A program made the position numbers and the translations under genes. From the sequence record PV785814.1: DNA of 64,000 nucleotides; one strand, 5' to 3'. Positions 2,661 through 60,036 of the stretch are shown piece by piece. Position 1 is the first letter of the stretch. Every line of letters starts with the position of its first letter. The notes beneath the pieces are model-generated. The model saw only the letters and a program-made list of their open reading frames with translations, was not told the origin of the DNA and made no database searches.

Positions 2661-2945
2661 ATGATAGTCAATATTGCTCATCATTCTTTTGATGTGTACA
2701 TTGGTCGCGGCACCCCGTACGGAAATCCATTTAAAAGTGGAACAGACGGCACTCGGAGCGAAGTTATAGAGCTTTATCGAGAGTGGTTGCGCATTCAGTT
2801 ACAAGACGACGAATTTAAAAAGCAGTTTATGCAACTAAAAGGAAAGATTCTCGGATGTCATTGTAAGCCAAAAGCATGCCATGGCGATGTAATTCTCGAA
2901 GAACTTGATAGATTGAGCAGTCCACTAAACAATTTTATAGGTTAA
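2661..2945 (+). CDS. DUF4326-family protein
   Basis: DVYIGRGTPYGNPF and LGCHCKPKACHGDV motifs. Confidence 0.8.
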   Translation: MIVNIAHHSFDVYIGRGTPYGNPFKSGTDGTRSEVIELYREWLRIQLQDDEFKKQFMQLKGKILGCHCKPKACHGDVILEELDRLSSPLNNFIG

Positions 2946-2949
2946 ATCT

Positions 2950-3243
2950 ATGAGAGAAGCAATTGCATTACTAAGCAACACGAGAATGGGATATACTGAC
3001 ATAAGCGCGTTTGGCGACCCAGTATTATTTGTTCATGCGGGGCATGAAACAGTTTTAAAGGTGCAATACACAGAAGATTGCTACTCATTTTTCGACTACA
3101 AAAGCAATTATCTTTATGAAGAACAGACGATAGATGATCTTGAGCTTCATATTAAATCAATCGAAGTTGGTCTTGACGACGATCTGCCATTAAATGGTAA
3201 CATCGACAAAGACACAATACCAGATGGGGAATTTTTAGAATGA
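2950..3243 (+). CDS. Hypothetical acidic protein
   Basis: 97-aa ORF whose stop overlaps the next start. Confidence 0.65.
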   Translation: MREAIALLSNTRMGYTDISAFGDPVLFVHAGHETVLKVQYTEDCYSFFDYKSNYLYEEQTIDDLELHIKSIEVGLDDDLPLNGNIDKDTIPDGEFLE

Positions 3244-4160
3244 AGTTTAGTGAATATCAAAGAATAAACGAATCTCTAGATCGCCCTGCTAATTATAAAC
3301 TGGTTAGAGAACTCCCAAATTTAAACGTGTATGCGTTTCAAGTTGGTGGTGTTTATTATGAAATAGACATTCAGAAATCAAACATACGAGAGCCTAACGG
3401 GATGCAGTCAATGAAAGCTGAAGTCTCATTCAAAGCACTCGACGGTAGTGGTTATCAACTAACCAAAAAAGACGATAAAACAGCACGAATTGTACTATCA
3501 ACCGTAGTTGATGCTATCTTCAGCTTCGTACGCGAATACAATCCTGCTCAAATATTATATTCCGCATTCAACGATGCTGATCCTTCAGATGCTGCTAAAC
3601 GACTTCGTTTATATCAGATCATGACTAAAGCAAAACTGCGTGAATTCCCCGAATATGATTTCCGAAACGTTGGGCGTGATTTCATCGTCTACGATGTCAA
3701 TTACCAAAAACGAGTCGAGGAATTTTCAAGAAGAGCACGTAGACCAGTGGGATATGAAGAAAGATCAGACCACGTTGAAGTGAATTTATCACATGCCAAC
3801 GCCTTTGCGTTTATACGAGCGTTTGGGGTAAATGATGGCGACTCAAAGAGCGGCGTACTAGGTAAAGGTCGAGCTTTCGTAGGCGCAACAAACGAAATTA
3901 AAGCACGTCTAAGAGTAGATCGTGTGGTGTATGAAATGTCTGATAGAGAAGGATGGCTTGCGGCTCTTCAGCACCCTATTTTTGACTATGGCGAGGGTCC
4001 TGAAGTTGATCGAACATATCTAGTCGGGGCATTTAAAAACTTCTATATCGTGTTGACTAGTCAAACAAGTCTAAAAATATACACCGATGATGCTGCGTTT
4101 ACAAAATATGTGAATGCATTCGACGCGCCATGGTTAAACCCAGAAATAATGGAATCTTAA
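3240..4160 (+). CDS. Candidate capsid-internal protein, paralog A
   Basis: N-terminus MKFSEYQRINE-S resembles T4 internal-protein targeting peptides with an (I/L)xE prohead-protease site; N-terminal domain shared with 4162-5013. Confidence 0.55.
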   Translation: MKFSEYQRINESLDRPANYKLVRELPNLNVYAFQVGGVYYEIDIQKSNIREPNGMQSMKAEVSFKALDGSGYQLTKKDDKTARIVLSTVVDAIFSFVREYNPAQILYSAFNDADPSDAAKRLRLYQIMTKAKLREFPEYDFRNVGRDFIVYDVNYQKRVEEFSRRARRPVGYEERSDHVEVNLSHANAFAFIRAFGVNDGDSKSGVLGKGRAFVGATNEIKARLRVDRVVYEMSDREGWLAALQHPIFDYGEGPEVDRTYLVGAFKNFYIVLTSQTSLKIYTDDAAFTKYVNAFDAPWLNPEIMES

Positions 4161-5125: not shown

Positions 5126-5797
5126 GACGTAACATCTAAGCTTGAGTTGAGCATGAAAGAGTTCGTTAACGTACCGTACAACGTGTACAAGACGCATTCT
5201 CTAGTTGGTCAAGCAAGTGAACATATCAACAATCACTTCAACCAACCGGGTGAAATCGTGACTTCAAACGTAATGTACGTTGAAATCAACGGCGGTATTG
5301 TGTATGCTGTGACGCACTCTAAGAGTCGTTATCAGCTAACCAACGTGTCTTTTGACGAGATTACGCACATGGTTCACGTTGCAGCCGAACGCGGTATCAA
5401 TATTCCGCTTTACAAGAACTAGAAAAACTGCTTTAATACAATCTGATTTTACTTTTTGAATTACTTTTGAGAGAAATATATTATGACTACTATCGTTAAC
5501 TTCACTGCTGCAATCGAACTAACTACTAAAGCTCTAGTTGAAACAAATCGCATCGAAGGTCGTTTCTACAACTCGACTATCGGTCACGAGCAAGGTGAGC
5601 AGTCAAAAACTGCTGCAATCGAAGCTTTCAAAGTAATTGACGGTAAAGTGTATGCAGAAACTCGCAACTGCGTGTTCCACTTACGCAACCTTTCTTCTCT
5701 AGCACTTGCTGACTTCAACACAATCAATGCACCTGTGTACTTGAAGCAAGCTGATGCGAAGTTCGACGAAATGGTTAAAGCAGCGTTATTCGCGTAA
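5123..5797 (+). CDS. Two hypothetical early proteins (5123-5422; 5483-5797)
   Basis: Starts chosen from promoter/RBS context; the track start at 4967 overlaps the terminator and promoter. Confidence 0.7.
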
Positions 5798-6249
5798 TGT
5801 ACCCGAAGAACAAAAGCTATTATGACTTGGTGTATCTTGACATCGCCAAGTCATTTGCTAAGAAAAGCACCTGCAAGCAGAAGCAAGTAGGTGCTGTCAT
5901 CGTCAAGAATGATCGCATTATCTCTCATGGTTACAATGGCACGCCGTCTGGTATGATTCATTGTCGCGATACTGCCGATTACGGTGATTTAACGCATCGT
6001 CAATGGTCAGAGATTCACGAGATACATGCCGAGCAAAACGCGATTTGCTACGCTGCACGCGCTGGCATATCAACTGAAGGCGCAACGATGTATGTAACAG
6101 CGTCGCCATGTCACAACTGTGCCAAGCTGATTGTAGCGGCTGGTATCAAAATTCTCATTGTTGGTTCGATTTACAGTGGCTCACAACCCGACTGGTGGCA
6201 TTGGCTACGTGATCGCGGTGTCAAAGTTATTTCGTTCGAAGACGAATAA
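5797..6249 (+). CDS. cd: dCMP deaminase
   Basis: GYNGTPSG, HAEQNAI and PCHNC zinc-deaminase motifs. Confidence 0.95.
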   Translation: MYPKNKSYYDLVYLDIAKSFAKKSTCKQKQVGAVIVKNDRIISHGYNGTPSGMIHCRDTADYGDLTHRQWSEIHEIHAEQNAICYAARAGISTEGATMYVTASPCHNCAKLIVAAGIKILIVGSIYSGSQPDWWHWLRDRGVKVISFEDE

Positions 6250-6303
6250 TGTTTAATATAAGTAATTCGGACTTATAATAGAGCTTTAACAAGAGAGAAA
6301 CAT

Positions 6304-7230
6304 ATGAAAAGTACAATGTTTTTAAACAATATCACGTGTATCGACCATGCATGGGTTGACGATATGGGTGAAATTAATGGTAACAGCTACAATCTTTGTG
6401 CTGAGATTACCGGTGAAGTTGACGAAACTGAACAAGTCGTGATTGATTTCAGCGGCTGTAAGAAAGCAATCAAGCATCTTGTAGACGATTCTGAATTCGC
6501 TATCGACCATCGTCTAGTTATCGTCGAGGGGTTTAGTGATGCGGTGTTGTCTCAAGTTGAAGATCGTCTTCGAATGCAAGTAGACACGCCAGTTTTCCAC
6601 GCAGTGTCTACAGTAAACGACTGGTATCAAGTCATCAAACCTAGCGAACTGATTGAAACAGACTTCAGAATCCCTAGCGATTCGCTGTACATGTCATATG
6701 TTGCTGAGTATCTTGAAGATATGCTACTTGAGCAGCTACGCAAGCAAGGTTATCCTGTTACACACGTCGCTGTAGAGCTTTCAGAGTCGTTTGACTTACC
6801 ATCATGGGCAAACAGTCACGTTGAATTCAATTACGCTCACGGGCTGCGTTCAAGCACTTCTTACGGGTGTCAGAATATCGCACACGGTCACCGTTCGTTC
6901 ATTGCAGTAGATCAGCACTTGAACAGCAAAGGTCGCAAGGTACTGAAGCGCATTGCCAAAGAAATGAGCGGCTATATTGCTTGGTCAGACAACATTCGCA
7001 AAGAAGATGAAGTGTCATACAAGTCACAGCGCGGTAACTTCTACATGCGTCACGAAAACATGATCGTGATACCAACTGAAACTACAGTTGAAAATCTCGC
7101 AAACTACATTGCAACGACATACGAAGAAGAATTCCAACGAATGGGTGTTCAGCGTGTGTGGGTTTCAGAGGGTCTATCAAAAGGCTCAGTCGTTGACATC
7201 AAAATCAACAAAGAATTGCTCTATAAGTAA
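6304..7230 (+). CDS. queD: QueD-like 6-carboxytetrahydropterin synthase (long two-domain form)
   Basis: CIDHA..GNSY..VVIDFS..K..K..VD..IDHR N-domain and a second HGL..GCQNIAHGHRS domain; adjacent to folE. Confidence 0.75.
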   Translation: MKSTMFLNNITCIDHAWVDDMGEINGNSYNLCAEITGEVDETEQVVIDFSGCKKAIKHLVDDSEFAIDHRLVIVEGFSDAVLSQVEDRLRMQVDTPVFHAVSTVNDWYQVIKPSELIETDFRIPSDSLYMSYVAEYLEDMLLEQLRKQGYPVTHVAVELSESFDLPSWANSHVEFNYAHGLRSSTSYGCQNIAHGHRSFIAVDQHLNSKGRKVLKRIAKEMSGYIAWSDNIRKEDEVSYKSQRGNFYMRHENMIVIPTETTVENLANYIATTYEEEFQRMGVQRVWVSEGLSKGSVVDIKINKELLYK

Positions 7231-7297
7231 TCAACAATAATTGTTTAGTAGCACGTCTCGGCGTGCTATTATTGTTTTCTATCAATGAGGAAATAGA

Positions 7298-7966
7298 ATG
7301 TTAGACAAAAATAAAGTAGATCCTATCCTAGGACAAAAAGTTGAAGCGCATCTTCGCAAAATCGGAATGCACACGCCGACTGTTGAAAACGGTCTAACTG
7401 ATGATGAAAAGAAAGCGATTCTTGAAGATCGATTTACTGACATCATGCAAGCTCTTGGTCTTGACTTGTCAGACGATTCGCTAGTCGATACGCCAAAGCG
7501 TTGGGCTAAGATGATGGTAAACGAGCTTATGAGCGGTCTATCGCCAGATATGTTCCCAAAATGTACGGCAGTAGACAACAAAATGAACTACGACCAGATG
7601 GTTTGTGAAAAAGGCATTACTGTTCTTTCACAATGTGAACATCACATCGTAACAATCGACGGGTTTGCAACGGTTGCATACATCCCGAAGAACAAAGTTC
7701 TTGGTCTTTCTAAGATGAATCGCATTGTTGAGTACTTCGCTCGACGCCCGCAGATTCAAGAGCGTTTGACTGTTCAAATCGCTGAAGCACTGAAGTTCAT
7801 TCTTGAAACTGAAGATGTTGCAGTGTTGATCGACGCCAAACACTACTGCGTGAAAGCACGCGGTGTTGAAGATAACAACTCAAGCACAGTGACTAGCCAC
7901 TTATCTGGTGCTTTCCGCAACGAACCAGAGGCTCGCGCTGAGTTTATGTCACTTGCACGAGGGTAA
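7298..7966 (+). CDS. folE: GTP cyclohydrolase I
   Basis: DTPKRWAKM, SQCEHH, GLSKMNRIVEYFARRPQIQERLT, HYCVKARG. Confidence 0.97.
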   Translation: MLDKNKVDPILGQKVEAHLRKIGMHTPTVENGLTDDEKKAILEDRFTDIMQALGLDLSDDSLVDTPKRWAKMMVNELMSGLSPDMFPKCTAVDNKMNYDQMVCEKGITVLSQCEHHIVTIDGFATVAYIPKNKVLGLSKMNRIVEYFARRPQIQERLTVQIAEALKFILETEDVAVLIDAKHYCVKARGVEDNNSSTVTSHLSGAFRNEPEARAEFMSLARG

Positions 7967-7969
7967 TTG

Positions 7970-9346
7970 ATGATCATTGAATACGTTATGTCTGCGACGG
8001 GTCATGCTCGTCTTGGTGCAGCACATAAACTAATGGACGTGGTTGACACGTCCTATTTGCGTAAAATTCTAGACGCAGCACAAGACCTCGATGGTGTTCA
8101 CAAAATCAGTATGCTGTACAACGCATATACTGAGAAGAAAGTCGGTCATCAAATCAATGATTTGTTCGGTGATTCTGTGTACAAAGTACACGTCGATTCT
8201 GGCGGTCTTCAGATTGTCAACCTAGGTTTAGACAACACACCAGAGCTTCGTAAAGCTGTTTACGAGAATCAAGCAGAGTCTGGTGACATTGGTATGTGTT
8301 TCGATGAAATCCCGTTGCACAATGAAGCAAAAGGCGGTGGCGCTGCTCGTATCAACACGAAAGATAAAGTTTTCATGTATGATCTAGCGTACAAGTACGG
8401 TGTCAAGACTGGCAAGAACATTCGCGCACAGATTGAGACGTATATCGCAACTGAAAGCAAGTGCAAGCCGTATATCATCTTACAAGGCAACTCAGACGAT
8501 GACTTCAAAGCATTCAGTGACGGCATTATGTCGCAACTCGAAGGCGTTGAAGAGTACATTGCTGGTTGTGCTGCTGCCGATACATGTATTGGTAATGGCG
8601 TACGTGAATCAATCGACATGATGAGCGTTATACCAAAGCTCAACATACCAGAACAAGCAAAGAAATCAGTTCACATGCTTGGGGTTGGGTCTGTTAAACG
8701 TCTATTGCCCGCTGTAGCTCTTATTAGAAGCGGTTATTTCGGTGATGAATTTCATATTAGCTATGACTCATCAACACACACGGGTTGTTTAACCAACCGT
8801 GAATACACAGATAAGCTCGGTCGTCGTAAGAAAATCTCAGGTCATGGTATCTTCAAAGATGGTAAGAAATTGCCTTCTCGTGAACTTGATGAAATGCTCG
8901 ACGAAGTATGGGGTCGATTCGGTGCTGTGTTACCTCGTGACAAAGAAGAGTTCAAAGATTTCGCAACACGCTTGTGGTTGAAAGAACTCGACAAAGAAAC
9001 GATGACAAATGAAGATATTGTGTTTGAAGTTGCATGTAATTTGTGTATAATCTTATCTCAAGTTAACAACTTCCAAGCGATTATCTCTGAAACGTTTGAC
9101 TTGAACACGCCAAAAGCTGCTGACTTGTCAGCGTTCTTCGGTGGTTCAGTTGAGACTAAAGAGCCGCAAGAGGGTTTCAAGAAGTGGTCAGCGATTCGTC
9201 GCCTTGATGTTCTTGATAAACTGTTAGACGTGAACACAGTCGAAGCGTATGATCGCTGGCACAGTAGCTACGTTGACAGACTACCGTCTATGCGCATTCG
9301 TCGCGGTACAACTGCTGAATTCCCAGCTTTCAAAGAACAAGAATAG
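7970..9346 (+). CDS. TGT-superfamily guanine transglycosylase (DpdA-like candidate)
   Basis: VDSGGLQ, CFDEIP, IILQGN, HMLGVGS, SYDSST correspond to TGT catalytic motifs; no canonical CxCxxC Zn motif seen; embedded in the que cluster. Confidence 0.75.
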   Translation: MIIEYVMSATGHARLGAAHKLMDVVDTSYLRKILDAAQDLDGVHKISMLYNAYTEKKVGHQINDLFGDSVYKVHVDSGGLQIVNLGLDNTPELRKAVYENQAESGDIGMCFDEIPLHNEAKGGGAARINTKDKVFMYDLAYKYGVKTGKNIRAQIETYIATESKCKPYIILQGNSDDDFKAFSDGIMSQLEGVEEYIAGCAAADTCIGNGVRESIDMMSVIPKLNIPEQAKKSVHMLGVGSVKRLLPAVALIRSGYFGDEFHISYDSSTHTGCLTNREYTDKLGRRKKISGHGIFKDGKKLPSRELDEMLDEVWGRFGAVLPRDKEEFKDFATRLWLKELDKETMTNEDIVFEVACNLCIILSQVNNFQAIISETFDLNTPKAADLSAFFGGSVETKEPQEGFKKWSAIRRLDVLDKLLDVNTVEAYDRWHSSYVDRLPSMRIRRGTTAEFPAFKEQE

Positions 9347-9375
9347 CGCCCTCGGGCGCTCTTTATGAGGTATAC

Positions 9376-10284
9376 ATGAGCAATTACGATCAAGTTTCAG
9401 CTATTGCTGCTGAACACTTAGGTAAAAAAGCAGGCGATTACAGTGATTTCGTCAACATTGTAAGCATTCGACCTGACTTACTCGTACCAATCCCACGCGA
9501 GTTAAACCGAACTGATTACGGCATTACTAACAGCGACTTTGCAGGGTTTGATACTTGGCACGGCTTTGAAGTTTCATCACTGACTGAACAAGGTCTACCA
9601 GTATCTGGTATGGCGAAAGTCGTGTATCCGAGTGATTCACCGAACATCGTTGAAAGTAAGTCAATGAAACTATACTGGAACAGCTTCAACATGGCTAAAA
9701 TCGGTGATAATCGCGCTGAAGTAGCACGAGCAATCGAAGTTATTGCAGCACGCGATTTGACAAACATCATCGGTGCACCTGTTCAAGTGAGTTTCTTCAC
9801 TGAAAAGCTAACTCAACCGCATGGTATGACTGGCTTCGCAGAGCTTGACAAATACGTATCTGAAGAGACTGTTTTCGACTCTGAAAGCGGCGCTGATACT
9901 GATTTGCTGCAAGAATCGCACATCAAGCGTTTGAAAGTATTCACACCTAATCTACGCTCGAACTGTCGCGTTACGCATCAACCAGACTTCGGTGATTTGT
10001 ACGTGTACATGAGCGGTGAGAAGACCCCGACTGTAGATAGCTTAATGCAATACATCGTGTCTTTCCGCAAAGAGAATCATTTCCACGAAGAATGTGTCGA
10101 AATGATTTACAAAGCGTTACTTGATAAGTTCAACCCAACTGAGCTTATGGTAACTGCACTATACACACGTCGCGGTGGTTGGAATATCTGCCCTGCACGT
10201 GCAACGCACGAAGAGCTATTACCTGAAGCACTAGGTAGTAAATCTGTCTCGCACACTAACGGAAGCTGTTTATTCCGTCAGTAA
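9376..10284 (+). CDS. queF: NADPH-dependent preQ0 reductase, bimodular type
   Basis: ESKSMKLYWNSF QueF motif, SNCRVTHQPD (catalytic Cys/Asp), ENHFHEECVE, YTRRGG. Confidence 0.93.
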   Translation: MSNYDQVSAIAAEHLGKKAGDYSDFVNIVSIRPDLLVPIPRELNRTDYGITNSDFAGFDTWHGFEVSSLTEQGLPVSGMAKVVYPSDSPNIVESKSMKLYWNSFNMAKIGDNRAEVARAIEVIAARDLTNIIGAPVQVSFFTEKLTQPHGMTGFAELDKYVSEETVFDSESGADTDLLQESHIKRLKVFTPNLRSNCRVTHQPDFGDLYVYMSGEKTPTVDSLMQYIVSFRKENHFHEECVEMIYKALLDKFNPTELMVTALYTRRGGWNICPARATHEELLPEALGSKSVSHTNGSCLFRQ

Positions 10285-10338
10285 TAAGAGCTATAATGAG
10301 TGTTCAATAGTGAGCACTCATATACTTGAGAGGTTAAA

Positions 10339-11055
10339 ATGAAAGTAGTATCTGTTCTAAGTGGTGGTCTTGACTCTACCATTCTTACATATTCACTAGT
10401 AGATCAATTTGGCAAAGACAATGTGTTTGCATTATCGTTCTACTACGGTCAAAAGCAGTCGATTGAGCTAGAAAAAGCGAAGTTGACTTGTCAAAAGCTC
10501 GGTATCGAGCATCGTCTAATCGACATTTCATTCTTAGGTGAAGTTGTTGCTCCTGTTTGTGCGAATATCAAAGGCACTGATGTTGCAATGCCGACTATTC
10601 AAGACGTTCTAGGCGACCCTCAGCCACCAACTGAAGTCCCATATCGTAACATGCTATTGAATACAATCGCGTTCTCGTTTGCTCAAGCGAATGGTTGTGC
10701 TGCGGTGTTTACTGGCATTCAAGTGCATGATGCATATGGCTATTGGGATTGCACACAAGACTTTCTTGATGGTATGAACCAAATCTCGTCACTGAATCGC
10801 CAACATGAAATCTCACTATGTGCACCGTTTGCTCAGATGTCAAAAGCTGAAGAAATCGCTATCGGTATAGAGCTTGGCGTGCCGTTCGAAGATAGCTTAA
10901 CTTGCTATGACCCGAACGAAGCGGGTGAAAGCTGTGGTGTATGTCCGTCATGTGCTGAACGCATCATGAACTTCGGCAAAGCGGGTATCAAAGACCCTGC
11001 ACCGTACTCGAAAGACATCCCGTGGGATCAAGTGTTTGCTAAGGCAGGTCATTAA
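10339..11055 (+). CDS. queC: 7-cyano-7-deazaguanine synthase
   Basis: SGGLDST PP-loop, YGQK, VPYRN, YWDC, C..CGVCPSC Zn motif. Confidence 0.95.
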   Translation: MKVVSVLSGGLDSTILTYSLVDQFGKDNVFALSFYYGQKQSIELEKAKLTCQKLGIEHRLIDISFLGEVVAPVCANIKGTDVAMPTIQDVLGDPQPPTEVPYRNMLLNTIAFSFAQANGCAAVFTGIQVHDAYGYWDCTQDFLDGMNQISSLNRQHEISLCAPFAQMSKAEEIAIGIELGVPFEDSLTCYDPNEAGESCGVCPSCAERIMNFGKAGIKDPAPYSKDIPWDQVFAKAGH

Positions 11056-11663
11056 TGTGTGGATTATTTGCTGCTAGAAGCAAGCAAGAGCTTATTGAAC
11101 TGTCAAAAAGCAATATCCATCGTGGTTCTCGTACTCACTCTGTGAGTACGTTTAAGAACGGTCGTGTGACAATTCATAAGTTCACGGGTGCATTCGACCC
11201 GACTAATGTGCCAGACAGTGCAGATTTCTATATCTGTCACGTTCAAGCACCAACTGGTACTAGTGCGCAAGCACACCCAGCGATTGTAACAGTCGAAGAG
11301 AACGGTCAGTTACACGACTCACACGTGTGGCATAATGGCATTCTCAAAGATCATTACATGAAAAAGCAGACTCAAACTTGGGATACTGCACACATTGCTG
11401 AAGCTATTTGCTACAACAAACTAAGCGAACTTGATGGTACGTTTGCATGTTTTCACTTCATTAACGGCAGTTTGCGTGTGTTTCGCAATGAAATCAGCCC
11501 GTTATTCATGAATGAAGACGGTACAGCATTCAGTAGCACAAGAACTATTCTAACGCCTGATCATGTTGAGCCGAATAAATTGTTTAACATCGACTTGAAG
11601 ACGTTTAGAATGTCTCTAGTAAGCGAGTTCAAGACTCGCGAAAATCCATATTTCTTTATGTAA
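11055..11663 (+). CDS. Class II (Ntn) glutamine amidotransferase, stand-alone
   Basis: N-terminal MCGLF nucleophile, HRG, WHNGIL, DGTFA, RNEISPL; coupled to queC by TAATG overlap. Confidence 0.8.
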   Translation: MCGLFAARSKQELIELSKSNIHRGSRTHSVSTFKNGRVTIHKFTGAFDPTNVPDSADFYICHVQAPTGTSAQAHPAIVTVEENGQLHDSHVWHNGILKDHYMKKQTQTWDTAHIAEAICYNKLSELDGTFACFHFINGSLRVFRNEISPLFMNEDGTAFSSTRTILTPDHVEPNKLFNIDLKTFRMSLVSEFKTRENPYFFM

Positions 11664-21896: not shown

Positions 21897-21972
21897 AAAG
21901 GGTTGACTTCGGTCAGCCCTTTCGCGTATTATAGCTTCATCGAAACGAAACACACAAAGAGAGAACACTATG
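21897..21972 (+). promoter_or_regulatory. Terminator-hairpin/early-promoter composite element, copy 1
   Basis: AAAGGGTTGAC-TTCG-GTCAGCCCTTT containing -35 TTGACT; -10 TATTAT(21927-32); ATCGAAACGA leader. Confidence 0.85.
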
Positions 21973-32778: not shown

Positions 32779-35045
32779 ACGTAGCAAATGTAATGAAAGA
32801 ACACGCAGCTATCCAAAACGCATTGATGGATTATCTCGATGCTGAATTCGACGGCGAAGGTCATATCGAATATGCAGAGTACTTCGAACAAGACGAAGCA
32901 TGGGACGTGACATACTACGATGGTGAGTTCCTTCGTGAACTAACTGTAACAGCAACTGCACTTGAGCAATGGATGAACAAATGATCGAAAGCACAATGGC
33001 TAATCATGAGCTAATCATGAACGCAATTGAGAAGTTCTTGTGCTTGAACTCTGTCCAATACACTGATGCCATTCAATATGATAAAGACAATCTCGGCTTC
33101 GATGTCGCGATTGTCGAAGAATCCGAGAATGGCACTGAATACACAGACGTGTTCATCCATAACTATCAACTAGAAAAGTACCTATGAATATTAACGATGT
33201 AATGCTTCACCACGAGAAGATTACTGACGCATTGCATAGCGTTATTAAGCAAAGGACTGCTAATCGAATCGTGTCTATCACATATGATAAAGATCGCTAT
33301 CTGTTTAAGATTGTACTCAGTGCATCTAATAGCTTAGACGATAGCGCCTTTGAATGGAGTATGTGCGTGACCAACGAAGCGATAGAAAACCAAATCTATG
33401 CGGAGACATTCACATGCAATTACCAGAATACTTGAGCCACATTACTGTAAAAGAAAACGTAATCACTATCGACTCAGCACGAGATAAAGTACTCGTTGTT
33501 GACTATCTCACTAATGCAAAAGCTAAGTTCCATATTGTCCAAAAGACAGTTAGCCGTTGCGAAATCCATGTTAAACGTCTAGGGTAATACAATGACAGAA
33601 CCAACACTGACTAACTGGAACGAGCTTAAAGACCAAAGCTTAGTGTATCGTATCAATAACGAAATACTACACCCACTCGGCTATGCTGTTGTACTCAATA
33701 CCGAAACAGGCACAAGTGACCGAGTACTAATCGCCGATGAGTTTAAATTCTCTGGCGAAGTACACGACAAACATAAAGATAATGTCACCATGACTGGACT
33801 ACTCGCGACTCATAAAGTAGTAGAACAACAAATCGCTAGTAAGTTCGGACTGAAAGACATATGGCATAATCTAGTAGACTGTACCGATAAAGTGTTCGTA
33901 TCCGATAACTCAGATTTAGAAAAAGCATATGAGTTCCAATACGCAGATACAGAAAACGAAATCACTGAAGGCGATTGCTACTCAATAGAAGTATACGGCA
34001 CATCGGTATGGATATCTGATGACGAACAATACTTATTAACTGCTTGTAACGACGGCTGTGGCAATAGAGATATGTATCTCTTCGCGCTAAAGAATCTATC
34101 TAATGTAGAAATGTATTAGAAACTTAAAGAAAAGGGTTGCATTGTGCAGCCCTTTCGCGTATCATACACATATCAAATCAAGAAAGGAAAACATTATGAT
34201 TGGTCTATCTATTATAATACTCGTGTTCGTCGCAATCTTAGCGTTCGACTCAGTTGAAAGCATCATGAGCAACGAATACCGAACTGGCATCTGCATCTTC
34301 CTTGTCATATGCGCTGTCGTTAACGTAGCTAACATGTTTGTTATGCACAAATACGGAGTAATGCTATGAGCTTAACAATACTTCTACTCATACTCGTATG
34401 CTGTGTAGTACTAACAGCTATCTGTTTGTTCAGCTTCATCAACAAACCTGGCTTTGTTAAACTAATACTCACTGCTGTACTCGGCTTTATCTCATATGTG
34501 CTATTACACATCACGGCTGGTGCATTATGAGCGTGCTATTAATGTTCTTAATCGTTATCGCATGTGCCTGTGTCGTAGTAGCTCTATTCTGTTTTATCAT
34601 ATGCCTATTCGATGATAACGAATCAGACTCAGACAATGACAATAAAAGTGGTAGCTCATTCGCTACTAGAGAATCAATGAACACGTGTATTCGTGTAATG
34701 CAATCAATGTGAGAATACTATGACTCAAACACAAATACAAACAATCCGTGCAGTCTGTATCGACAATCAATCTCATCGTATAGACAAACCAGAACCACCT
34801 AGCGGCTTGACATTCGGCAAAGAATACATTGTCCACATGTATAACGTAAACGAACATACAAACAAACCACCTATGATTCGTATCACTAACGACGACAATA
34901 AACGCGCTAGTTATGTCGCTGCTCGTTTCAAACTGATTGTATGAATATACTAAACGAAATACCAACTAATTACATTATGCTTCTGCTATGCGTTCTAGCA
35001 GGCGTAGCTGGATGGTGCCTGAGCGATATATCAAAGCATGACTAA
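32775..35045 (+). CDS. Block of small hypothetical ORFs, including three tandem paralogs (32775-32984, 32981-33187, 33184-33435), 33592-34119 and several small membrane proteins (34196-34369 onward)
   Basis: Overlapping junctions; shared M..H..I..A...L N-termini in the paralogs. Confidence 0.65.
34131..34198 (+). promoter_or_regulatory. Terminator-hairpin/early-promoter composite element, copy 2
   Basis: AAAGGGTTGCA-TTG-TGCAGCCCTTT; TTGCAT-17-TATCAT. Confidence 0.85.
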
Positions 35046-45000: not shown

Positions 45001-46746
45001 GAAAGTTTGCGCTGCTGTGAAAACGTTCAACGATGTTAAAGCGATTAAGCAAGCGCAAGCTAGTGCTTACCTCGATACGATTCGTTTACGCGCTTGTTCG
45101 ATTCAACACTTGTTTGACATCATTCTTGATGAAGAAGACATGATCATTGAAGCCGTTCAAGTTCTGCACTTCTACGGCGAAGAGCGTAAAACACCGCGTA
45201 TGACTAATTTCAAGTGGAAGTTTAGTCAATTCTGCAACGTAGGGAATCAGTTTAGAGAGAACGTCCAGACGCATAGCGCGCCAGTTGGTCAGAAAGCGCA
45301 TGGGATTGCGGGGCCGTCGAGTGAGTATAAACGAGCGTTAGCTTCCGACGTTGAAGCGACGTGGGAACATCAAGGCAGTCGCAAGTCAGTAGATCGCTAT
45401 AAAAAGTATCTTGGGTATATCCCGGGTGTGAATACAGGCAGTGGTGGCGGGGTAGATAAAGTTCATTACTACATCACATTATGGAAAGAAGATTTTCCAT
45501 TATTTTCATAATCACCAAAAAAAGGGTTGCGCTATGCAGCCCTTTTCTGTATTATAGCTTTATCGAAACGAGATACAGAGAGAACATTATGACTTCAGTA
45601 ATCAACGCAAAATTCCAAGCAGTTATCCACAAAGCACAAGACGCAGTTGTTGAAGTCAATACTTCTTTCGATTACGTAGCATCTAACGCTGAAATCGCAA
45701 CTGACATTTGGCACAACGAAATGACTCCGTTCGAGCGCCTAGAGTTTGTTCAAGAATTCACGCCAGAGAATCTAGTTATCGAGCGTCGTTACAAACTTGC
45801 ACTATGGTTAATTGAAAATTCTTTAAAATAATCATTGACAGCAATCACCAAAAAGCCGATAATAGCTACATCAAGACGAAAGAGAGAACATTATGAACTA
45901 CACTACTGAAACAATCACAGCTTGCATGAATCTAGTTGCTACATTGAAATCAGACAAGATTACAAAAGGTAACGTTACTAAACTTCGCGCTGCATACCGC
46001 GCACAGCAAGATCAAGAAGTGTCGATTGCAATGTCTTCTATCTGTTCTATTGCTGAACGTCACTTAGACCGTAAAGCAGCGAATCGTCCGAGCATGACGA
46101 AGTGCGCAGAGTCTTACTTGAACTTTGATTGGCGCACAATCCCTGGTTGTATTGGTTTCACTCGCGAAGTAGCAGAGGTTTAAATGATTAGTCTTTTAAA
46201 AGCAGTAAACAGTGAGTTCACAGACAAGACGGGTTATGTTTTGCCTTCTGAAATCGCTGAGAAAGTCGCACGAGAGTGTGAGCAAGAATATTGGGCTACG
46301 TTTTACACGCATGATTGCACGTCGTTAGACACTGCTGATCGGGACATTGCATTCGATTGCATTGCCACAGAACTTGGCTTCGAAGCTGGCTGGCCATTGT
46401 ACATGTCAACTCAAGAATACACAGAGTCATTCTGGGCAGCTATTGAGAAATTGGAGAAAGCATGAAAATTTTATCTAAAGTAAAAGAGTTCTTCTTCCCT
46501 ACGATCACGCCACCAGTGATTGGCGAACAATATCGTCAAATCGAGAGAGATTGGGTTGACGTTGAAAATCACGCGACTATAATCGAAGTCACCAACGTAT
46601 CGAAAGACGGTAAGCACATAAAATACGAATGGGTTCGTATTGAAGGCAAGCCATGCGTGCAAACATTCGCAGGTTCAACATCGTCTAGCAGTACATACGA
46701 AATGGCAACACACCACCTTTACAGAATATTTGAGAAAGTAAAATGA
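42033..46746 (+). CDS. Block of small hypothetical ORFs, including 43325-43903, a DUF551-like protein 44553-44936, 44933-45511, 45589-45831, 45893-46183
   Basis: Dense + strand ORFs; DRLPE..YL..YW motif in 44553-44936. Confidence 0.65.
43177..43201 (+). terminator. Intrinsic terminator (identical to 15249-15273)
   Basis: AAAGCCCC-TTAATT-GGGGCTTTTTT. Confidence 0.85.
43243..43327 (+). promoter_or_regulatory. Early promoter and conserved leader
   Basis: TTGCGT-17-TATTAT-AGCTACATCGAAACGA. Confidence 0.8.
45521..45591 (+). promoter_or_regulatory. Terminator-hairpin/early-promoter composite element, copy 4
   Basis: AAAGGGTTGC-GCTAT-GCAGCCCTTT; TATTAT; ATCGAAACGAGATAC; GAGAGAACATTATG. Confidence 0.85.
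45835..45895 (+). promoter_or_regulatory. Early promoter and conserved leader
   Basis: TTGACA-17-GATAAT-AGCTACATCAAGACGAAAGAGAGAACATTATG. Confidence 0.8.
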
Positions 46747-55600: not shown

Positions 55601-57208
55601 CAGAGAATCTTGAGCATCTAGTCGCTAACGGGTACTTGCCCGACGGGCAAATCGAAGTGCTGTTGTTTAGAGACAATAAGCAACAAAACTATCGTTATGC
55701 CTACGTTATTGACGAGCGTGTGCCGAAAGAAGCAATCCACGCGCCATACTTCTGCGGTATTGCGACTTCTGTTGAGATCATGCGCTACCACTATCAGACA
55801 CCAGACGATAAATGTCTATGTCATACTGAAGACTACAGAATCCTTAGTATGCGTTCGCAAGACAACAAAGGTCGTTCAGTGCGTCATTGCCCCGAGTGTG
55901 ACACTCGCTACACGATTCAGATGCCAAGGCGCGACGCTATCTTCCGTGTTCAGACGTTTACCGAGGATGGCTGGGGAAGATGGAAGCTTCTGTATCACAC
56001 GGGCGGTGTTTTCTACACGATTCCAGAAAACAATGTATTCCCTGCCGAAGACATCATCAAGGTCGACCGAACACCAGTGAATGAATTCGGAAGCGGTGAC
56101 GACCAACAAGGTGCAATCTCGCTTGCTGACTTCAATTTCAGCGGGGTTGTTGAGAAAGCCGTGCCACGTACCATCGAAGGCGCTCACGGCTCGGCAACTG
56201 AATACGTACCTGTATAAAAATAGTACAAAAAATCGGCGTTCCTGCGGAGCTCAGTGTCTTGCGACACTGTTAAGCTCCTTGGGTTATAATGAACGAAAAT
56301 ACAATCGTTAACATATTGAGGAAGATTTAATGAGCACAAATTCAAGCATTAGCATTACAAACATCGACGGCACAATTCGTTCAATCTACTGTCACTGGGA
56401 TGGCGGTATGTGGGATGGCGGCGTAGCACAAACTCTAATCGAGTTCTATCGCACTGAGAACGAAGTCAACGCACTTATCGATCAAGGTAACTGTAGCTCA
56501 CTTAGCGGTACGATTGAAGACAGTGTTTTCTATCACCGTGACCGTGGCGAAGAACTTGAGATCTACGCTGACGTGCAAGAACAAGAATACGACTACATGT
56601 TCCGCGACGGCAAGTGGTTTGTTACTTGCAATGAAACAACGAACACCGAAGTTGAACTCACCGAAGAGCTTCGCGCTGAACTAGAAAACTACGAGTACTA
56701 AAATGAAAACTACGTTCTTCAATGCGTCTGGTACTGAAATGCAATACAACTGGTTTCATGTGCCATTCGCGTACACCAATGTTAATCTAGGCAATAAGCA
56801 ACTCGTCATTGCTGAAATTTCTCGCAATGCAAAACGAATCGCGTATGCACTGAGAAACAACATTACAGGTCGAGTTGGTATTGTTCGCTTCACTGCTGTT
56901 CTTGATGATCGCAAACGTGGGAAATACTTTGAATACAAAGGTAACAAAGTGTTCTTGAAAGATGTAGGTGTGGTTCTATGAAAACACTGTTAATCGTGTT
57001 GGCATTCATTCTGATCGGCATTTGCGTAGGTCGAAAGCCAATCAAATGCGAAGTATGTGGGGCTGACGATGCATCAAGTGATGGTGTCGGTCTAATGCTT
57101 TGTGATAAGTGTCACGCTAAAGGCAAAAAAATAATCAAAAAAAGGGTTGCATTGTGCAGCCCTTTTTCGTATCATAGCTACATCGAAAACAAAGAGAGCA
57201 AATTATGA
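52667..57208 (+). CDS. Block of small hypothetical ORFs (e.g. 52899-53402, 54203-54556, 55474-56217 Cys-rich, 56330-56701 with YCHWDG motif)
   Basis: Dense + strand ORFs; terminator 54087-54109 (AAGACGC-TTCG-GCGTCTT) and promoter TTGCAT-17-TAATAT at 54140-54168. Confidence 0.65.
57140..57207 (+). promoter_or_regulatory. Terminator-hairpin/early-promoter composite element, copy 5
   Basis: First 40 bp identical to 59964-60003. Confidence 0.88.
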
Positions 57209-58905
57209 ACATCACATTAGAAAACTACAACGAAATCGAGAAAGCGTTGCATAACTTTAAGAAAAATTCATTCACGTGCGTTAGTGAGTATTTGAAAGAT
57301 ATGTCTCCTGCACATGAGTGTAATCGTAAAATTGAGAGCATTACAATCGGCGTGATGCAAGCAGCGGTCACAAACAAAATCGTGAATTTAGAGCCTGACT
57401 TTCAACGAGGCGTTGTTTCATCACTTGAATTCCAACAGGGTATCATCAAGAGCGTTTTCTCTAAGAGTGAAAACATCGCGCCGCTGCAAGTTGCGACATA
57501 TGAAGGTCGAAGCGACAACTTCAGTGCCGATCTGATGGATGGCAAGCAACGATTTTCTGCAATGCTTAATTTCATGAGTGGAAAATTCAAAACAGCCCCT
57601 GATACATATTGCATTGACGGTGCAACCAAGATAGACTTGGGAGGGAAGTTCTTTAATGAGATCCCTGGCAATATGCGAACACGCTTTACATCAACTAAAT
57701 TACAAGTAGAACTACTATTCAAAAAGACTCGCACCGAGCTAGGCGAAGCATTTGCACATCGAAACAATAACAATCAAATGTCAGACGCTGATAGAATGAA
57801 TGCTTCGATGACTGATTTGAGCGATAGAATGCGCGAGATTTACGAATCAAACTCATTGTTCACTGACGAATACTTCAACGATAAGGAAATCAAAAAGACG
57901 GGAGTGTGGGGATTGACCGGACGAGATCGCAATACAAACATTTATGAAAAATTGATGTTTGCAGTGATGTTCGACCACCACCGCGAGAGTATTTTCAACA
58001 GTGCAGATAACACATTCCCGATTCCTTATTACTTTAGACTGAATCGTGGGTCGGCATCACATTCAACATACGAAACATTCTTGCATGATAATGCTACGAT
58101 TAACCCAACTACGCGCATTGAAATCATACTAAAAGCATTGGTTAAACTTTTAGATAAATTACCAAAGACAGAACGCAAGGCGTTCATGAGTTCCAGCGGC
58201 GCATTTCAATACATGGTAGGCATGGTTCTGCGAATTGAAAACGAGGGATCAATTAACCTAGTGTCAGGGGGTGCTTTAAAGAAGCTGGCATTCGAGTTGA
58301 TGAATGTGTTCAATTCAGAGAGAAACGTCGCTGAATTCGATTCACTGTCATTACAGCGTGAGATTCGCCTAGTGAACAATGACAAGTCATTAGACCAAAC
58401 AGCAAAGGATGAGCGAATCCATGAGTTGCGTAATGACGTAAATTATGTGAAAAAGGTTAAGTTTGTAAAAGCGTTGAATCACGAAGATTCACGTATGATT
58501 GACCGTGCTATTCAACACGCATTCGAGAAGCTATGTGAAATTCATGAATGGAAATGGGCTGAACCGCGTAAATCACCAAACAAGGCAATCAAAGAAGAAA
58601 TGAAATCTCGTAGCCAAGATAAATGTGAACTTGATGGCATGCCTATTGAAAATCCACATGCAGATCATATTAAGCCGTATAACAATGGCGGCAAGCAAGA
58701 ATCAGCTTCCGACTATGCACTTGTATGCGGAAAGTATAATCAAGGTCGAGGTACGCAAACGTGGGTTTCTTATGTTACAAATAGCCAGACATTCGAAGAG
58801 ATTCTTGCGAAGCGTGCAGAAGAACACGGCGTGCATTATGTGACTGCACTTAAAAGATGCCTTCAGAATGCAGCCAATATGGATGCACTTGCCGCTGCAC
58901 AGTAG
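57205..58905 (+). CDS. DUF262 (ParB-like) plus C-terminal HNH endonuclease, GmrSD-like architecture
   Basis: PDFQRGVV..IIKSVF..LMDGKQRFSAM..F (DUF262); C-terminal C..HADHIKPY..GG..VCGKYN (HNH). Confidence 0.8.
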   Translation: MNITLENYNEIEKALHNFKKNSFTCVSEYLKDMSPAHECNRKIESITIGVMQAAVTNKIVNLEPDFQRGVVSSLEFQQGIIKSVFSKSENIAPLQVATYEGRSDNFSADLMDGKQRFSAMLNFMSGKFKTAPDTYCIDGATKIDLGGKFFNEIPGNMRTRFTSTKLQVELLFKKTRTELGEAFAHRNNNNQMSDADRMNASMTDLSDRMREIYESNSLFTDEYFNDKEIKKTGVWGLTGRDRNTNIYEKLMFAVMFDHHRESIFNSADNTFPIPYYFRLNRGSASHSTYETFLHDNATINPTTRIEIILKALVKLLDKLPKTERKAFMSSSGAFQYMVGMVLRIENEGSINLVSGGALKKLAFELMNVFNSERNVAEFDSLSLQREIRLVNNDKSLDQTAKDERIHELRNDVNYVKKVKFVKALNHEDSRMIDRAIQHAFEKLCEIHEWKWAEPRKSPNKAIKEEMKSRSQDKCELDGMPIENPHADHIKPYNNGGKQESASDYALVCGKYNQGRGTQTWVSYVTNSQTFEEILAKRAEEHGVHYVTALKRCLQNAANMDALAAAQ

Positions 58906-58953
58906 TTTAAACACCTCGTGCATTGATATATAATTAATGCACGAGGGGATATT

Positions 58954-59961
58954 ATGATTAAACTAGACTCAATAGATAAGATAGCATCATACATTAGTAT
59001 GGTTTGCAAAGAGCCGTTCACATATAAAAACAAACTGTACCTGCCACGTGCAATGAGAATACAAGAAGGCATACGCCGTGGGTTTATTTGCCCATCTCAT
59101 TGCGGGGCTTGCTGTGGCAACTGGTCGCTTGATTATCTTCCGAACGACGTTATAGATTCGATTGACAGCGAACGACTTGAATCAAGAGCACCGACCGATA
59201 TACACCCACACACAGATTACTATCAAACACGAGAGGCAGTTTTCAATGGTAAGAGTGTACGTTTCGTGTCTGACACGCAAGAGAAGAATTACGTAAATCG
59301 TATAAAACGGACAAATGCATGTCGGAACGTGAATGACGAGGGGCGTTGTGATATCCACACATTCGTTCTAGGTGGCGATTATGGTCAGCCGTTCTCATGT
59401 GACTTTGAATTGATCCGATTTATTTCCCCGAGCGGGATGGGTAATGGTAAAGACTATGCACGAGGTCAGTTGTTGATTGACATTCAAGACGTGTCTGGAA
59501 AAATTGTCCCACCTCACAATCAAAACGGTAGAATAACGACTGACTATTATTCGCAAGCTAGGCATATGCCAGACATGAACAATGATCGTCGCGGTGGACT
59601 AGATCTGTCTCATGAAAAGTTCAAGGACATGCATCATACTGAAATCCCGGGCCCGAAATGTTTGTTGACTGAACCTGATGCCGAATCAATTAAAGATGTC
59701 ATTCGAAAATTCAAGCGCCTCAACACGTGGGCGAGACATATTGGTGTACGAACATGGGTGCCAGAGATAATCGAGTGGCTAGAAACTACAAACCACGGCT
59801 CTATGTTGATCAATCGAGTTCCTAACGTAAATCCAACCAAGCCGTCTGACACTCGCGTAGAAGATGTCATCCTCTACTCGATAGAACATTTAGACGGGTT
59901 GTATGAACGTGCGGTGGGTGAGAAAAGTGTGACACAGGGCACATTATCAGATTGGATATGA
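58954..59961 (+). CDS. Cys-cluster protein (YkgJ/FliB-like CxxxCxxCC, probable Fe-S or Zn)
   Basis: CPSHCGACC followed by CRNV..GRCDIH..QPFSC. Confidence 0.7.
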   Translation: MIKLDSIDKIASYISMVCKEPFTYKNKLYLPRAMRIQEGIRRGFICPSHCGACCGNWSLDYLPNDVIDSIDSERLESRAPTDIHPHTDYYQTREAVFNGKSVRFVSDTQEKNYVNRIKRTNACRNVNDEGRCDIHTFVLGGDYGQPFSCDFELIRFISPSGMGNGKDYARGQLLIDIQDVSGKIVPPHNQNGRITTDYYSQARHMPDMNNDRRGGLDLSHEKFKDMHHTEIPGPKCLLTEPDAESIKDVIRKFKRLNTWARHIGVRTWVPEIIEWLETTNHGSMLINRVPNVNPTKPSDTRVEDVILYSIEHLDGLYERAVGEKSVTQGTLSDWI

Positions 59962-59963
59962 AT

Positions 59964-60036
59964 AAAAGGGTTGCATTGTGCAGCCCTTTTTCGTATCATA
60001 GCTTTATCGAAACGAGATACGAAAGAGAACATTATG
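59964..60036 (+). promoter_or_regulatory. Terminator-hairpin/early-promoter composite element, copy 6
   Basis: AAAAGGGTTGCATTGTGCAGCCCTTTTTCGTATCATAGCT, then ATCGAAACGAGATACGAAAGAGAACATTATG. Confidence 0.88.

Follow-up and report, generated by a model that had tools for sequence, protein, structure and literature searches.

We describe a two-gene cassette in Vibrio phage QD01, a 248-kb KVP40-like member of the Straboviridae whose isolation host is Vibrio natriegens. The cassette lies in a 64,000-nucleotide stretch of DNA (hereafter, the window) that is 100% identical to record PV785814.1, in which the coordinate equals the window position plus 62000. Its first gene (gene 1, QD01_237, 57205..58905, + strand) encodes a divergent DUF262-HNH protein of 566 amino acids (aa), and the second (gene 2, QD01_238, 58954..59961, + strand) encodes DpdM, a 335-aa member of the DUF3109/YkgJ-like methyltransferase family that converts the DNA base dPreQ1 (7-aminomethyl-7-deazaguanine) to its methylated form, mdPreQ1. 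The two genes make up an accessory module of 2.8 kb, located in a hyperplastic part of the QD01 genome, bounded by two identical copies of a promoter-early stem-loop (PeSL) element and missing from the closest relatives of the phage. We describe the module and its parts, and weigh the proposal that its products act as a restriction-modification-like pair on an already modified base.

The cassette and its bounding repeats

The preliminary description of the window, made from the sequence alone, had placed an exact 40-mer on the + strand at both 57140-57179 and 59964-60003, spaced 2824 bp apart and bracketing exactly two large genes. Each of these statements was borne out, the neighboring genes encoding proteins of 76-257 aa. 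The 40-mer occurs at just these two places in the full QD01 record, and past it the two copies continue to resemble each other, more weakly, as far as the start codon of each downstream gene. Outside QD01, a scan of 50,697 phage records found the exact sequence once in phage VS1 and once in phage VS2; it was absent from IMG/VR and from JGI metagenome contigs, so no donor was found.

The expected variation in the presence of the cassette among sister phages was confirmed, as it is gone at this site from VS1 and VS2 and also from KVP40 and R11Z. VS1 and VS2 are the closest relatives of QD01; both flanks are 96-98% identical, and each genome carries a single copy of the 40-mer and no cassette. 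Their empty site is perfect to the base, with a small Zn-ribbon gene leading directly into the homologue of QD01_239, and KVP40 and R11Z share this empty arrangement with a diverged element. If the repeat pair were a chance match or an assembly artifact, the cassette would not be a discrete unit. We found no support for this idea, which we consider extremely improbable, though an assembler could be misled by the family of repeats of which the 40-mer is a member: none of 100 dinucleotide-preserving shuffles contained a match, the empty sites in two independent sister genomes equal the predicted single-copy junction to the base, and the structure is the same in the published QD01 record.

Judged by its sequence features, the 40-mer is a PeSL element of the nt-1/KVP40 subtype, a terminator hairpin combined with a sigma-70-type early promoter. 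The left copy (57140..57179, + strand) forms a hairpin at 57140-57167 (A-run, GGG, loop, CCC, T-run) whose stem holds the -35 box TTGCAT (57147-57152), followed after 17 nt by the -10 box TATCAT (57170-57175); the 5' untranslated region (5'UTR) and Shine-Dalgarno sequence (SD) of gene 1 then extend to 57204. The right copy (59964..60003, + strand), identical over 40 bp, repeats this layout, with the hairpin at 59964-59991, TTGCAT at 59971-59976, TATCAT at 59994-59999 and the 5'UTR of QD01_239 reaching 60033. As RNA, the hairpin folds at -17.3 kcal/mol (z = -5.2). The published consensus of nt-1/KVP40 PeSLs is A3-4 G3, loop, C3 T3-4, with a promoter of TTGYVH, 17 nt and TAWWAT (PMC4122927). Both QD01 stem-loops follow it, as do the -35 box and the spacing, and the -10 box agrees at 5 of 6 positions, the exception being a C in place of the A or T of the consensus. 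Each promoter is followed by a conserved 5'UTR, an SD and an ATG.

The bounding copies belong to a repeat family of ~80-bp intergenic elements, each comprising the hairpin, the -10 box, a conserved 5'UTR and the start codon. Six copies lie on the + strand of the window (at 21897, 34130, 36189, 45517, 57137 and 59964). Of these PeSLs, the one at 34130..34169 (+ strand) has the same hairpin, with 5 mismatches over 40 bp; comparison of the 40-mer with this copy and with the one at 45520 gave differences at 5-6 of 40 positions. Kindred copies occupy homologous sites in VS1, KVP40, R11Z, phage D484 and a KVP40-like contig (L032) that is discussed below. Since the flanking copies and the empty sites of the sisters are identical while other copies are 5-6 positions off, the match reflects recent recombination, beyond mere family resemblance.

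PeSLs are enriched in hyperplastic regions and beside indels in nt-1/KVP40 phages (Comeau 2014, PMC4122927), and inverse PCR in RB49 and phi1 has demonstrated recombination between PeSLs into mini-circles (Arbiol 2010, PMC2839356). The QD01 repeats are thus not the end of a novel mobile element; they are terminator/promoter elements already described for nt-1/KVP40 phages (PMC4122927, PMC2839356), and it follows that the bounding repeats and the mode of cassette movement represent a known mechanism. As in the published cases, the elements combine terminator hairpin, early promoter, SD and start codon, recur in hyperplastic regions and flank open reading frames (ORFs) that vary among close relatives, here with six copies in the window, the cassette indel and a neighboring indel in VS2. 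What differs, apart from the C in the -10 box, is the cargo: two large genes of assignable function over 2.8 kb rather than a small ORFan. By the mini-circle route known from T4-type phages, homologous recombination between PeSLs would have either inserted the module in QD01 or removed it from its sisters.

The cassette had also been described as captured, implying a bacterial source. This origin is unsupported and we reject it: the G+C content of the cassette (0.40-0.45) equals that of its flanks, and the sole close kin of gene 1 comes from a second phage of the KVP40-like group.

Two observations concern the immediate surroundings. VS2 carries an extra segment of ~445 bp with a 97-aa ORF (contig L002, ~3605-4048, falling between window positions 56270 and 56320) that QD01 and VS1 are without; it is a second indel of the same hyperplastic region. 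In QD01, the Zn-ribbon ORF QD01_236 (56978-57208, 76 aa) extends across the hairpin of the left PeSL, its end overlapping the start codon of gene 1 in an ATGA. Its homologue in KVP40 has 59 aa, and the tail of QD01_236 may be an annotation by-product of the PeSL.

The two genes of the cassette

Gene 2 is identified by its sequence as a member of the DpdM family named by Cui et al. 2023 (DUF3109, YkgJ-like; PMC10516641). It is 50-52% identical to the DpdM of phage VH7D across 92% of its length and matches phrog_21666 with E = 4e-102. The CxxxCxxCC cluster (C46, C50, C53, C54) and four further cysteines (C123, C132, C149, C236) are all invariant in the family alignment, and the eight correspond to the VH7D cysteines listed in PMC10516641. 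A search of NCBIfam returned nothing meaningful for either gene of the cassette. In the DpdM tree, the QD01 protein forms its own deep branch within the long-type clade (Vibrio-phage subtype), which has 100/100 support. Homologues found by tblastn comprise the VH7D/ValKK3/phi-Grn1/phi-ST2 group (50% identity), six Vibrio phages of the D48x series (41%) and, more remotely (28-32%), Pseudanabaena phage Pan1, Mycobacterium phage Knocker and the Cellulophaga phiSM group. In the genomes of this remote set, DpdM adjoins a DpdA/TGT gene inside a 7-deazaguanine cluster. The same holds for contig L021 (IMGVR_UViG_3300010885_016018), where a ParB_N protein (5285-5989) stands directly upstream of DpdM in a QueF-QueC-QueD-QueE-FolE cluster.

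Expressed in E. coli together with the VH7D DpdA2, the VH7D DpdM yields mdPreQ1 (PMC10516641), and by analogy with this orthologue the QD01 enzyme would convert dPreQ1 to mdPreQ1. In Table 2 of the same paper, VH7D DpdM lowers dPreQ1 in E. coli from 2765-3666 to 0-97 per million nt, while mdPreQ1 reaches just 9-40; the VH7D enzyme may do more than methylate, or mdPreQ1 may be under-detected in that assay. The preliminary description had taken the CxxxCxxCC protein to be a partner or modifier. The notion of an unidentified partner falls away, as the protein is DpdM, a family already described, with experimental support (PMC10516641).

That QD01 modifies its DNA had likewise been supposed, and the same window indeed holds a preQ1 DNA-modification cluster, DpdA2 included, that would supply the DpdM substrate (6304..11663, all genes on the + strand). 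It contains QueD-like (6304-7230), FolE (7298-7966), DpdA2 (7970-9346), QueF (9376-10284), QueC (10339-11055) and a 202-aa ORF (11055-11663), DpdA2 being 62% identical to the nt-1 archetype YP_008125322 and 91.5% to the VH7D orthologue. QD01 has what is expected of a DpdM genome, namely DpdA and a preQ1 pathway with QueF. The Que/DpdA2 cluster is kept in all relatives, including VS1, VS2 and KVP40, and DpdM is the variable component, occurring at three genomic sites: near tk in the VH7D group, after the nicotinamide mononucleotide (NMN) adenylyltransferase gene in the D48x phages and L032, and at the cassette site in QD01. On this basis, QD01 DNA should bear mdPreQ1, and the DNA of VS1 and VS2 dPreQ1 alone. 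Like the described DpdM proteins, that of QD01 has the cysteine set, the insertions of the long Vibrio-phage subtype, and phage-encoded DpdA2, QueF and preQ0 genes; it differs in being a separate branch of the long clade at a third genomic site, with a DUF262-HNH gene ahead of it.

The Que/DpdA2 cluster spans 5360 bp in QD01, compared with 6098 bp in VS1 and VS2 and ~6.1 kb in phi-pp2, where a homing endonuclease is annotated; the difference points to an endonuclease-gene insertion that is missing from QD01. Long-type DpdM homologues also occur in a V. parahaemolyticus prophage (GCA_014964055.1, contig L033 5001-5942, 43% identity), near genes for terminase, endonuclease VII, HNH and KAP NTPase proteins, and in a resolvase-bearing island (contig L035 5001-5945, 38% identity). 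No Que or DpdA genes were found within 5 kb of either.

Gene 1, from its sequence and predicted structure, is a very divergent but full-length member of the DUF262-HNH family, in which a ParB-like NTPase sensor is joined by a helical linker to an HNH domain of the Cas9/McrA type. The ParB/Srx-like NTPase domain (residues ~40-220) has QR at 67-68, DGKQR at 112-116 and FxxxN at 183-187; a helical middle (~240-450) follows, and the HNH domain (~474-512) contains DH at 487-488 and N512. A profile of 64 DUF262-HNH proteins, built without gene 1, aligns over positions 6-423 of 428 to residues 44-524 (E = 1.4e-53), gene 1 being ~150 aa longer than typical members (about 400-420 aa; phrog_1583-like). 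PHROGs returned two DUF262 families and an HNH family, the latter at residues 457-537. The AlphaFold2 (AF2) model (pLDDT 77.8, pTM 0.68) is confident in its N- and C-terminal domains, which helices connect; its weak matches in the PDB are to a Cas9 HNH domain (probability 1.0) and to ParB-N/sulfiredoxin folds. Pfam, PHROGs, the family profile and the AF2 model thus all agree with the DUF262 and HNH domains first proposed from the sequence.

Relatives of this protein are scarce. In an exhaustive search of 1.84 billion representatives, gene 1 had 205 matches, almost all to residues 40-230, the best being ~417-aa proteins with GmrSD_N and PF01844 HNH domains; besides these N-domain matches the search gave one shortened relative (P0002, described below) and no full-length one. 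Across 5.8 billion protein clusters, IMG/VR, JGI metagenome contigs and tblastn of phage GenBank, the only close homologue was QD01 itself. A sequence search of the PDB with gene 1 alone gave only spurious lectin matches; the family profile reached the N-domain of BrxU (7p9k) and HNH domains of the Cas9/McrA type.

The architecture had been likened to that of GmrSD, generally a bacterial system. The N-terminal DUF262 part of this comparison stands. Its other half does not, as Pfam found no DUF1524 domain and the C-terminus aligns instead to PF01844-type and Cas9/McrA HNH domains; lacking DUF1524, gene 1 is not a canonical GmrSD and belongs to a related yet distinct family. Nor is DUF262 confined to bacteria, since ~100 phage records carry one, RB49-type phages included. 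In common with GmrSD, BrxU, TgvAB and GrwAB, gene 1 has an N-terminal DUF262 with QR, DG(Q/K)QR and FxxxN, a helical linker and a C-terminal beta-beta-alpha-Me nuclease. It departs from them in its canonical HNH (PF01844, Cas9/McrA type), in being phage-encoded beside a modification enzyme, and in that only its N-domain is similar in sequence (to BrxU, with E = 2e-6 for the profile). Membership in the Menshen system was considered and rejected: the PADLOC match to NsnA covers the shared DUF262 domain only, and no NsnB or NsnC was found. The nearest bacterial full-length DUF262-HNH relatives, P0004 and P0005 (L038 6001-7263; L039 6001-7254), adjoin a DUF4007 protein and a 1097-aa BrxC/PglY-like protein, and their loci also hold a ~1100-aa protein with RNA polymerase alpha-CTD-like repeats; these surroundings look like a phosphorothioate/BREX-type defense locus.

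With DUF262 belonging to the ParB/Srx superfamily, gene 1 could instead be a modification helper, a ParB-fold NTPase that loads or positions DpdA2 or DpdM on DNA as bacterial DpdB does with DpdA, its HNH domain nicking or inactive. ParB_N proteins stand beside or near DpdM or DpdA in 5 of ~25 DpdM loci (Knocker, phiSM, L020, L021, L025), and the Zn site of the gene 1 HNH is degenerate. We nevertheless give this idea little credence. The end-to-end match of gene 1 is to DUF262-HNH nucleases, and not to ParB_N or DpdB-type proteins: it has no match to ParB_N (PF02195) at E up to 0.1 and none to a ParB profile made from DpdM loci, and it possesses the HNH domain. The catalytic His (H488) and the metal-binding Asn (N512) of that domain are kept, and VH7D DpdA2 and DpdM work in E. 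coli without a helper.

Linkage and expression of the gene pair

A test case for the linkage of the two genes is provided by P0002, the sole closer kin of gene 1, a 133-aa protein that is 35% identical to residues 8-119 and is encoded in the KVP40-like contig L032 (Logan ERR525595_625, 6001-6402). Its gene directly follows the NMN adenylyltransferase gene, behind a PeSL, and 55 bp further on lies a DpdM gene whose product is 45% identical to that of QD01. P0002 stops just past DGKQR; its final 11 residues, like the context of its stop codon, can be aligned to the C-terminus of gene 1. From this alignment it looks like an in-frame internal-deletion remnant, made up of ~123 N-terminal and the last ~11 residues, in which the nuclease was deleted and DpdM retained. 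The spacers of QD01 and L032 are alike, with the same stop-codon context, TTTAAW, 17 nt and a TATAAT hairpin.

The preliminary description would have been undermined had the two genes never been found together again; L032 supplies a second occurrence, at a different genomic site. Because kin of gene 1 stands upstream of DpdM at another site in another phage, both genes have travelled together. As QD01 and L032 fall on either side of the deepest split among long-type DpdM proteins, the simplest history is an old DUF262-HNH/DpdM pair from which the nuclease was later lost in several lineages. The aligned sequences thus establish a conserved adjacency through deep divergence, and adjacency shows co-movement alone. 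DpdM by itself is common, and the nuclease is seen only with DpdM, once in decayed form, a pattern of modifier alone and nuclease with modifier that resembles orphan methylases versus restriction enzymes. One further candidate remnant, D484_0199 (253 aa, downstream of DpdM in the D48x phages), gave a weak profile match to the HNH region that neither BLASTP nor Pfam confirmed, and was rejected.

Co-movement could also arise if no efficient recombination site lies between the genes. The linkage would then be purely physical, with gene 1 an independent accessory nuclease (for host-DNA degradation, phage exclusion or as a selfish HNH) unrelated to 7-deazaguanine, and DpdM an ordinary add-on to the preQ1 pathway. 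Several facts lend weight to this: most DpdM carriers have DpdM alone, L032 lost the nuclease and kept DpdM, many T4-type phages that carry DUF262 genes (e.g., the RB49 group) are not known to bear deazaguanine modifications, and T4-type phages have many free-standing HNH genes. DpdM also has its own promoter-like element, on account of which the pair looks like two expression units. Yet gene order and intergenic architecture persist across 35-45% protein identity and two genomic sites, kin of gene 1 never occurred without DpdM in the very large databases searched, and DUF262 is a modified-DNA sensor in every characterized system. A purely physical linkage is a possible but doubtful explanation of the pair.

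The intergenic element (58906..58946, + strand) consists of TTTAAA (58906-58911), 17 nt and TATAAT (58929-58934), embedded in a 14-bp hairpin that pairs 58914-58927 with 58933-58946 and whose 3' arm covers the SD of DpdM (-21.8 kcal/mol, z = -6.2). The same arrangement of TTTAAW, 17 nt and TA(T/C)AAT in an SD-pairing hairpin ahead of DpdM occurs in L032 (6400-6456) and L009 (3940-4000). The hairpin layout is common to QD01, L032 and D484, the last of which has no DUF262 gene; stem sequences differ and pairing is kept. We propose that gene 1 is read from the early promoter of the left PeSL with DpdM on the same transcript, so that in early read-through RNA the SD of DpdM would be buried in the hairpin, while a start at the hairpin-internal TATAAT, near 58941, would leave it free. 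Translation of DpdM is probably delayed, and the conserved hairpin layout suggests that it depends on the internal promoter. In phage T4, genes e, soc, 49 and I-TevI have SD-covering hairpins with an internal promoter, and only transcripts started there are translatable. The QD01 element resembles these ribosome-binding-site-sequestering hairpins in the 3' arm over the downstream SD and the -10 box in the loop or 3' arm; it differs in that its box is sigma-70-like (TATAAT, with TTTAAA at -35), the T4 late motif TATAAATA being matched at 7 of 8 positions at best.

A putative writer and reader of methylated 7-deazaguanine

Taken together, the best explanation of the whole is a PeSL-bounded module in which a DpdM writer is paired with a DUF262-HNH nuclease that reads 7-deazaguanine, in the manner of restriction-modification (R-M). 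We assign this a probability of roughly 0.5. Its structural and evolutionary account is very likely correct; the functional coupling of nuclease and DpdM is tentative, at somewhat less than even odds. In the proposed mechanism, FolE, QueD, QueC, QueF and DpdA2 of the phage would place dPreQ1 in DNA, and DpdM would methylate it to mdPreQ1. In the product of gene 1, an HNH nuclease would be fused to an NTP-dependent DUF262 sensor that reads the 7-deazaguanine state of DNA, and the DpdM mark would separate QD01 DNA from the dPreQ1-only DNA of co-infecting relatives and from host DNA. The role suggested in the preliminary description, destruction of DNA from co-infecting phage or the host, is likewise conjectural. 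The two proteins would thus form an R-M-like pair acting on an already modified base. The nuclease may cut DNA that has no methyl mark, or may be licensed by the mark as SspE is; the sequence fits either.

Precedents exist for such a scheme. DUF262 is a sensor of modified DNA in GmrSD/BrxU and in SspE. GrwAB, a DUF262-family system of Vibrio cholerae, restricts 7-deazaguanine phages, with escapers mapping to DpdA, and so offers a precedent for reading of 7-deazaguanine DNA in Vibrio by the GmrSD family. SspABCD-SspE and the DUF262 nucleases of phosphorothioate/BREX-type loci share with QD01 the placement of a DUF262 nuclease next to DNA-modification genes, and the sparse self mark sensed by SspE both stimulates its NTPase and steers nicking to DNA that is without the mark. 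Unlike in SspE systems, the putative QD01 mark is a methylated 7-deazaguanine rather than a phosphorothioate, and the carrier is a lytic phage; no ssp, dnd or brx genes, and no other genes of phosphorothioate modification, were found in the QD01 annotation from 1-126 kb.

A number of observations weigh against the proposal of a coupled writer and reader. One concerns the extent of methylation: phi-Grn1 and phi-ST2 methylate ~5% of their dPreQ1 (35-44 versus 668-816 per million nt), or roughly 20 sites per genome. At this level, a nuclease cutting all unmethylated dPreQ1 would attack the genome of its own phage, barring a more efficient enzyme in QD01 or a sequence context common to both proteins, and a licensing mark of the SspE type fits better than protection of every site. 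DpdM clearly works in the absence of the nuclease, as it occurs without a DUF262 partner in VH7D-type phages, the D48x series, phiSM, Pan1, Knocker, the V. parahaemolyticus prophage and the resolvase-bearing genomic island. The coupling rests on two loci, in one of which the nuclease is a deletion remnant.

Other points of the same kind bear on gene 1, on its promoters and on the direction of movement. Its HNH domain keeps one Cys of each CxxC pair, having lost half of the Zn ligands, and the central Asn is replaced by Asp, so that nuclease activity, as far as the sequence tells, is not assured. The Pfam GmrSD_N match (E = 8e-5) scores 23.3 against a gathering threshold of 33.2, and a full-length fold search with the AF2 model had no match at E < 0.001. 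Promoter-like hexamers are no commoner in the region than in shuffles, and the argument for an internal promoter therefore rests on its conservation in three phages. Finally, the junctions are equally compatible with insertion into QD01 and with a recombination of the two copies that removed the cassette from VS1 and VS2. At the dinucleotide directly after the 40-mer, VS1 agrees with the right copy (TT) and VS2 with the left (AC), which is not decisive because this position is polymorphic in R11Z and KVP40 too. Parsimony across the wider group favors gain in the QD01 lineage.

A more far-reaching version of the R-M-like proposal would make the cassette a selfish, phage-borne module on a hypermodified base, its nuclease telling mdPreQ1 from dPreQ1-only or unmodified DNA, and the module spreading on PeSL mini-circles as selfish R-M systems do. 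A phage with the cassette could then destroy or out-replicate co-infecting relatives, all of which share the dPreQ1 pathway and most of which are without DpdM. We regard this version as unlikely.

Much of the locus falls into known categories. The repeats and the mobility mechanism have been described before; DpdM of QD01 is a new member of a known family, and gene 1 a new, highly divergent member of another. The suspicion that the pairing had not been described is upheld in that a DUF262-HNH/DpdM pair was found neither in the DpdM paper (PMC10516641) nor in a full-text literature search, and this pairing may be the only new part. Should the coupling prove non-functional, the locus would amount to a previously unseen DpdM variant together with an orphan gene of the DUF262-HNH family, in a hyperplastic region of familiar type; this would be of value for annotation and otherwise ordinary. 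In either case, the locus is an unusually clean and recent example of a PeSL-bounded gain or loss, with identical flanks, base-perfect empty sites in two sisters and assignable cargo, and is well suited to testing the mini-circle model.

The wider interest lies in the modification itself. The 7-deazaguanine marks of phage DNA are commonly seen as a shield from host restriction; in some phages an extra methyl group is added at a few dozen positions of each genome. A sensor-nuclease long tied to DpdM suggests a testable idea, that methylation may serve the phage's own nuclease as a tag of identity, directed against related phages or host DNA.

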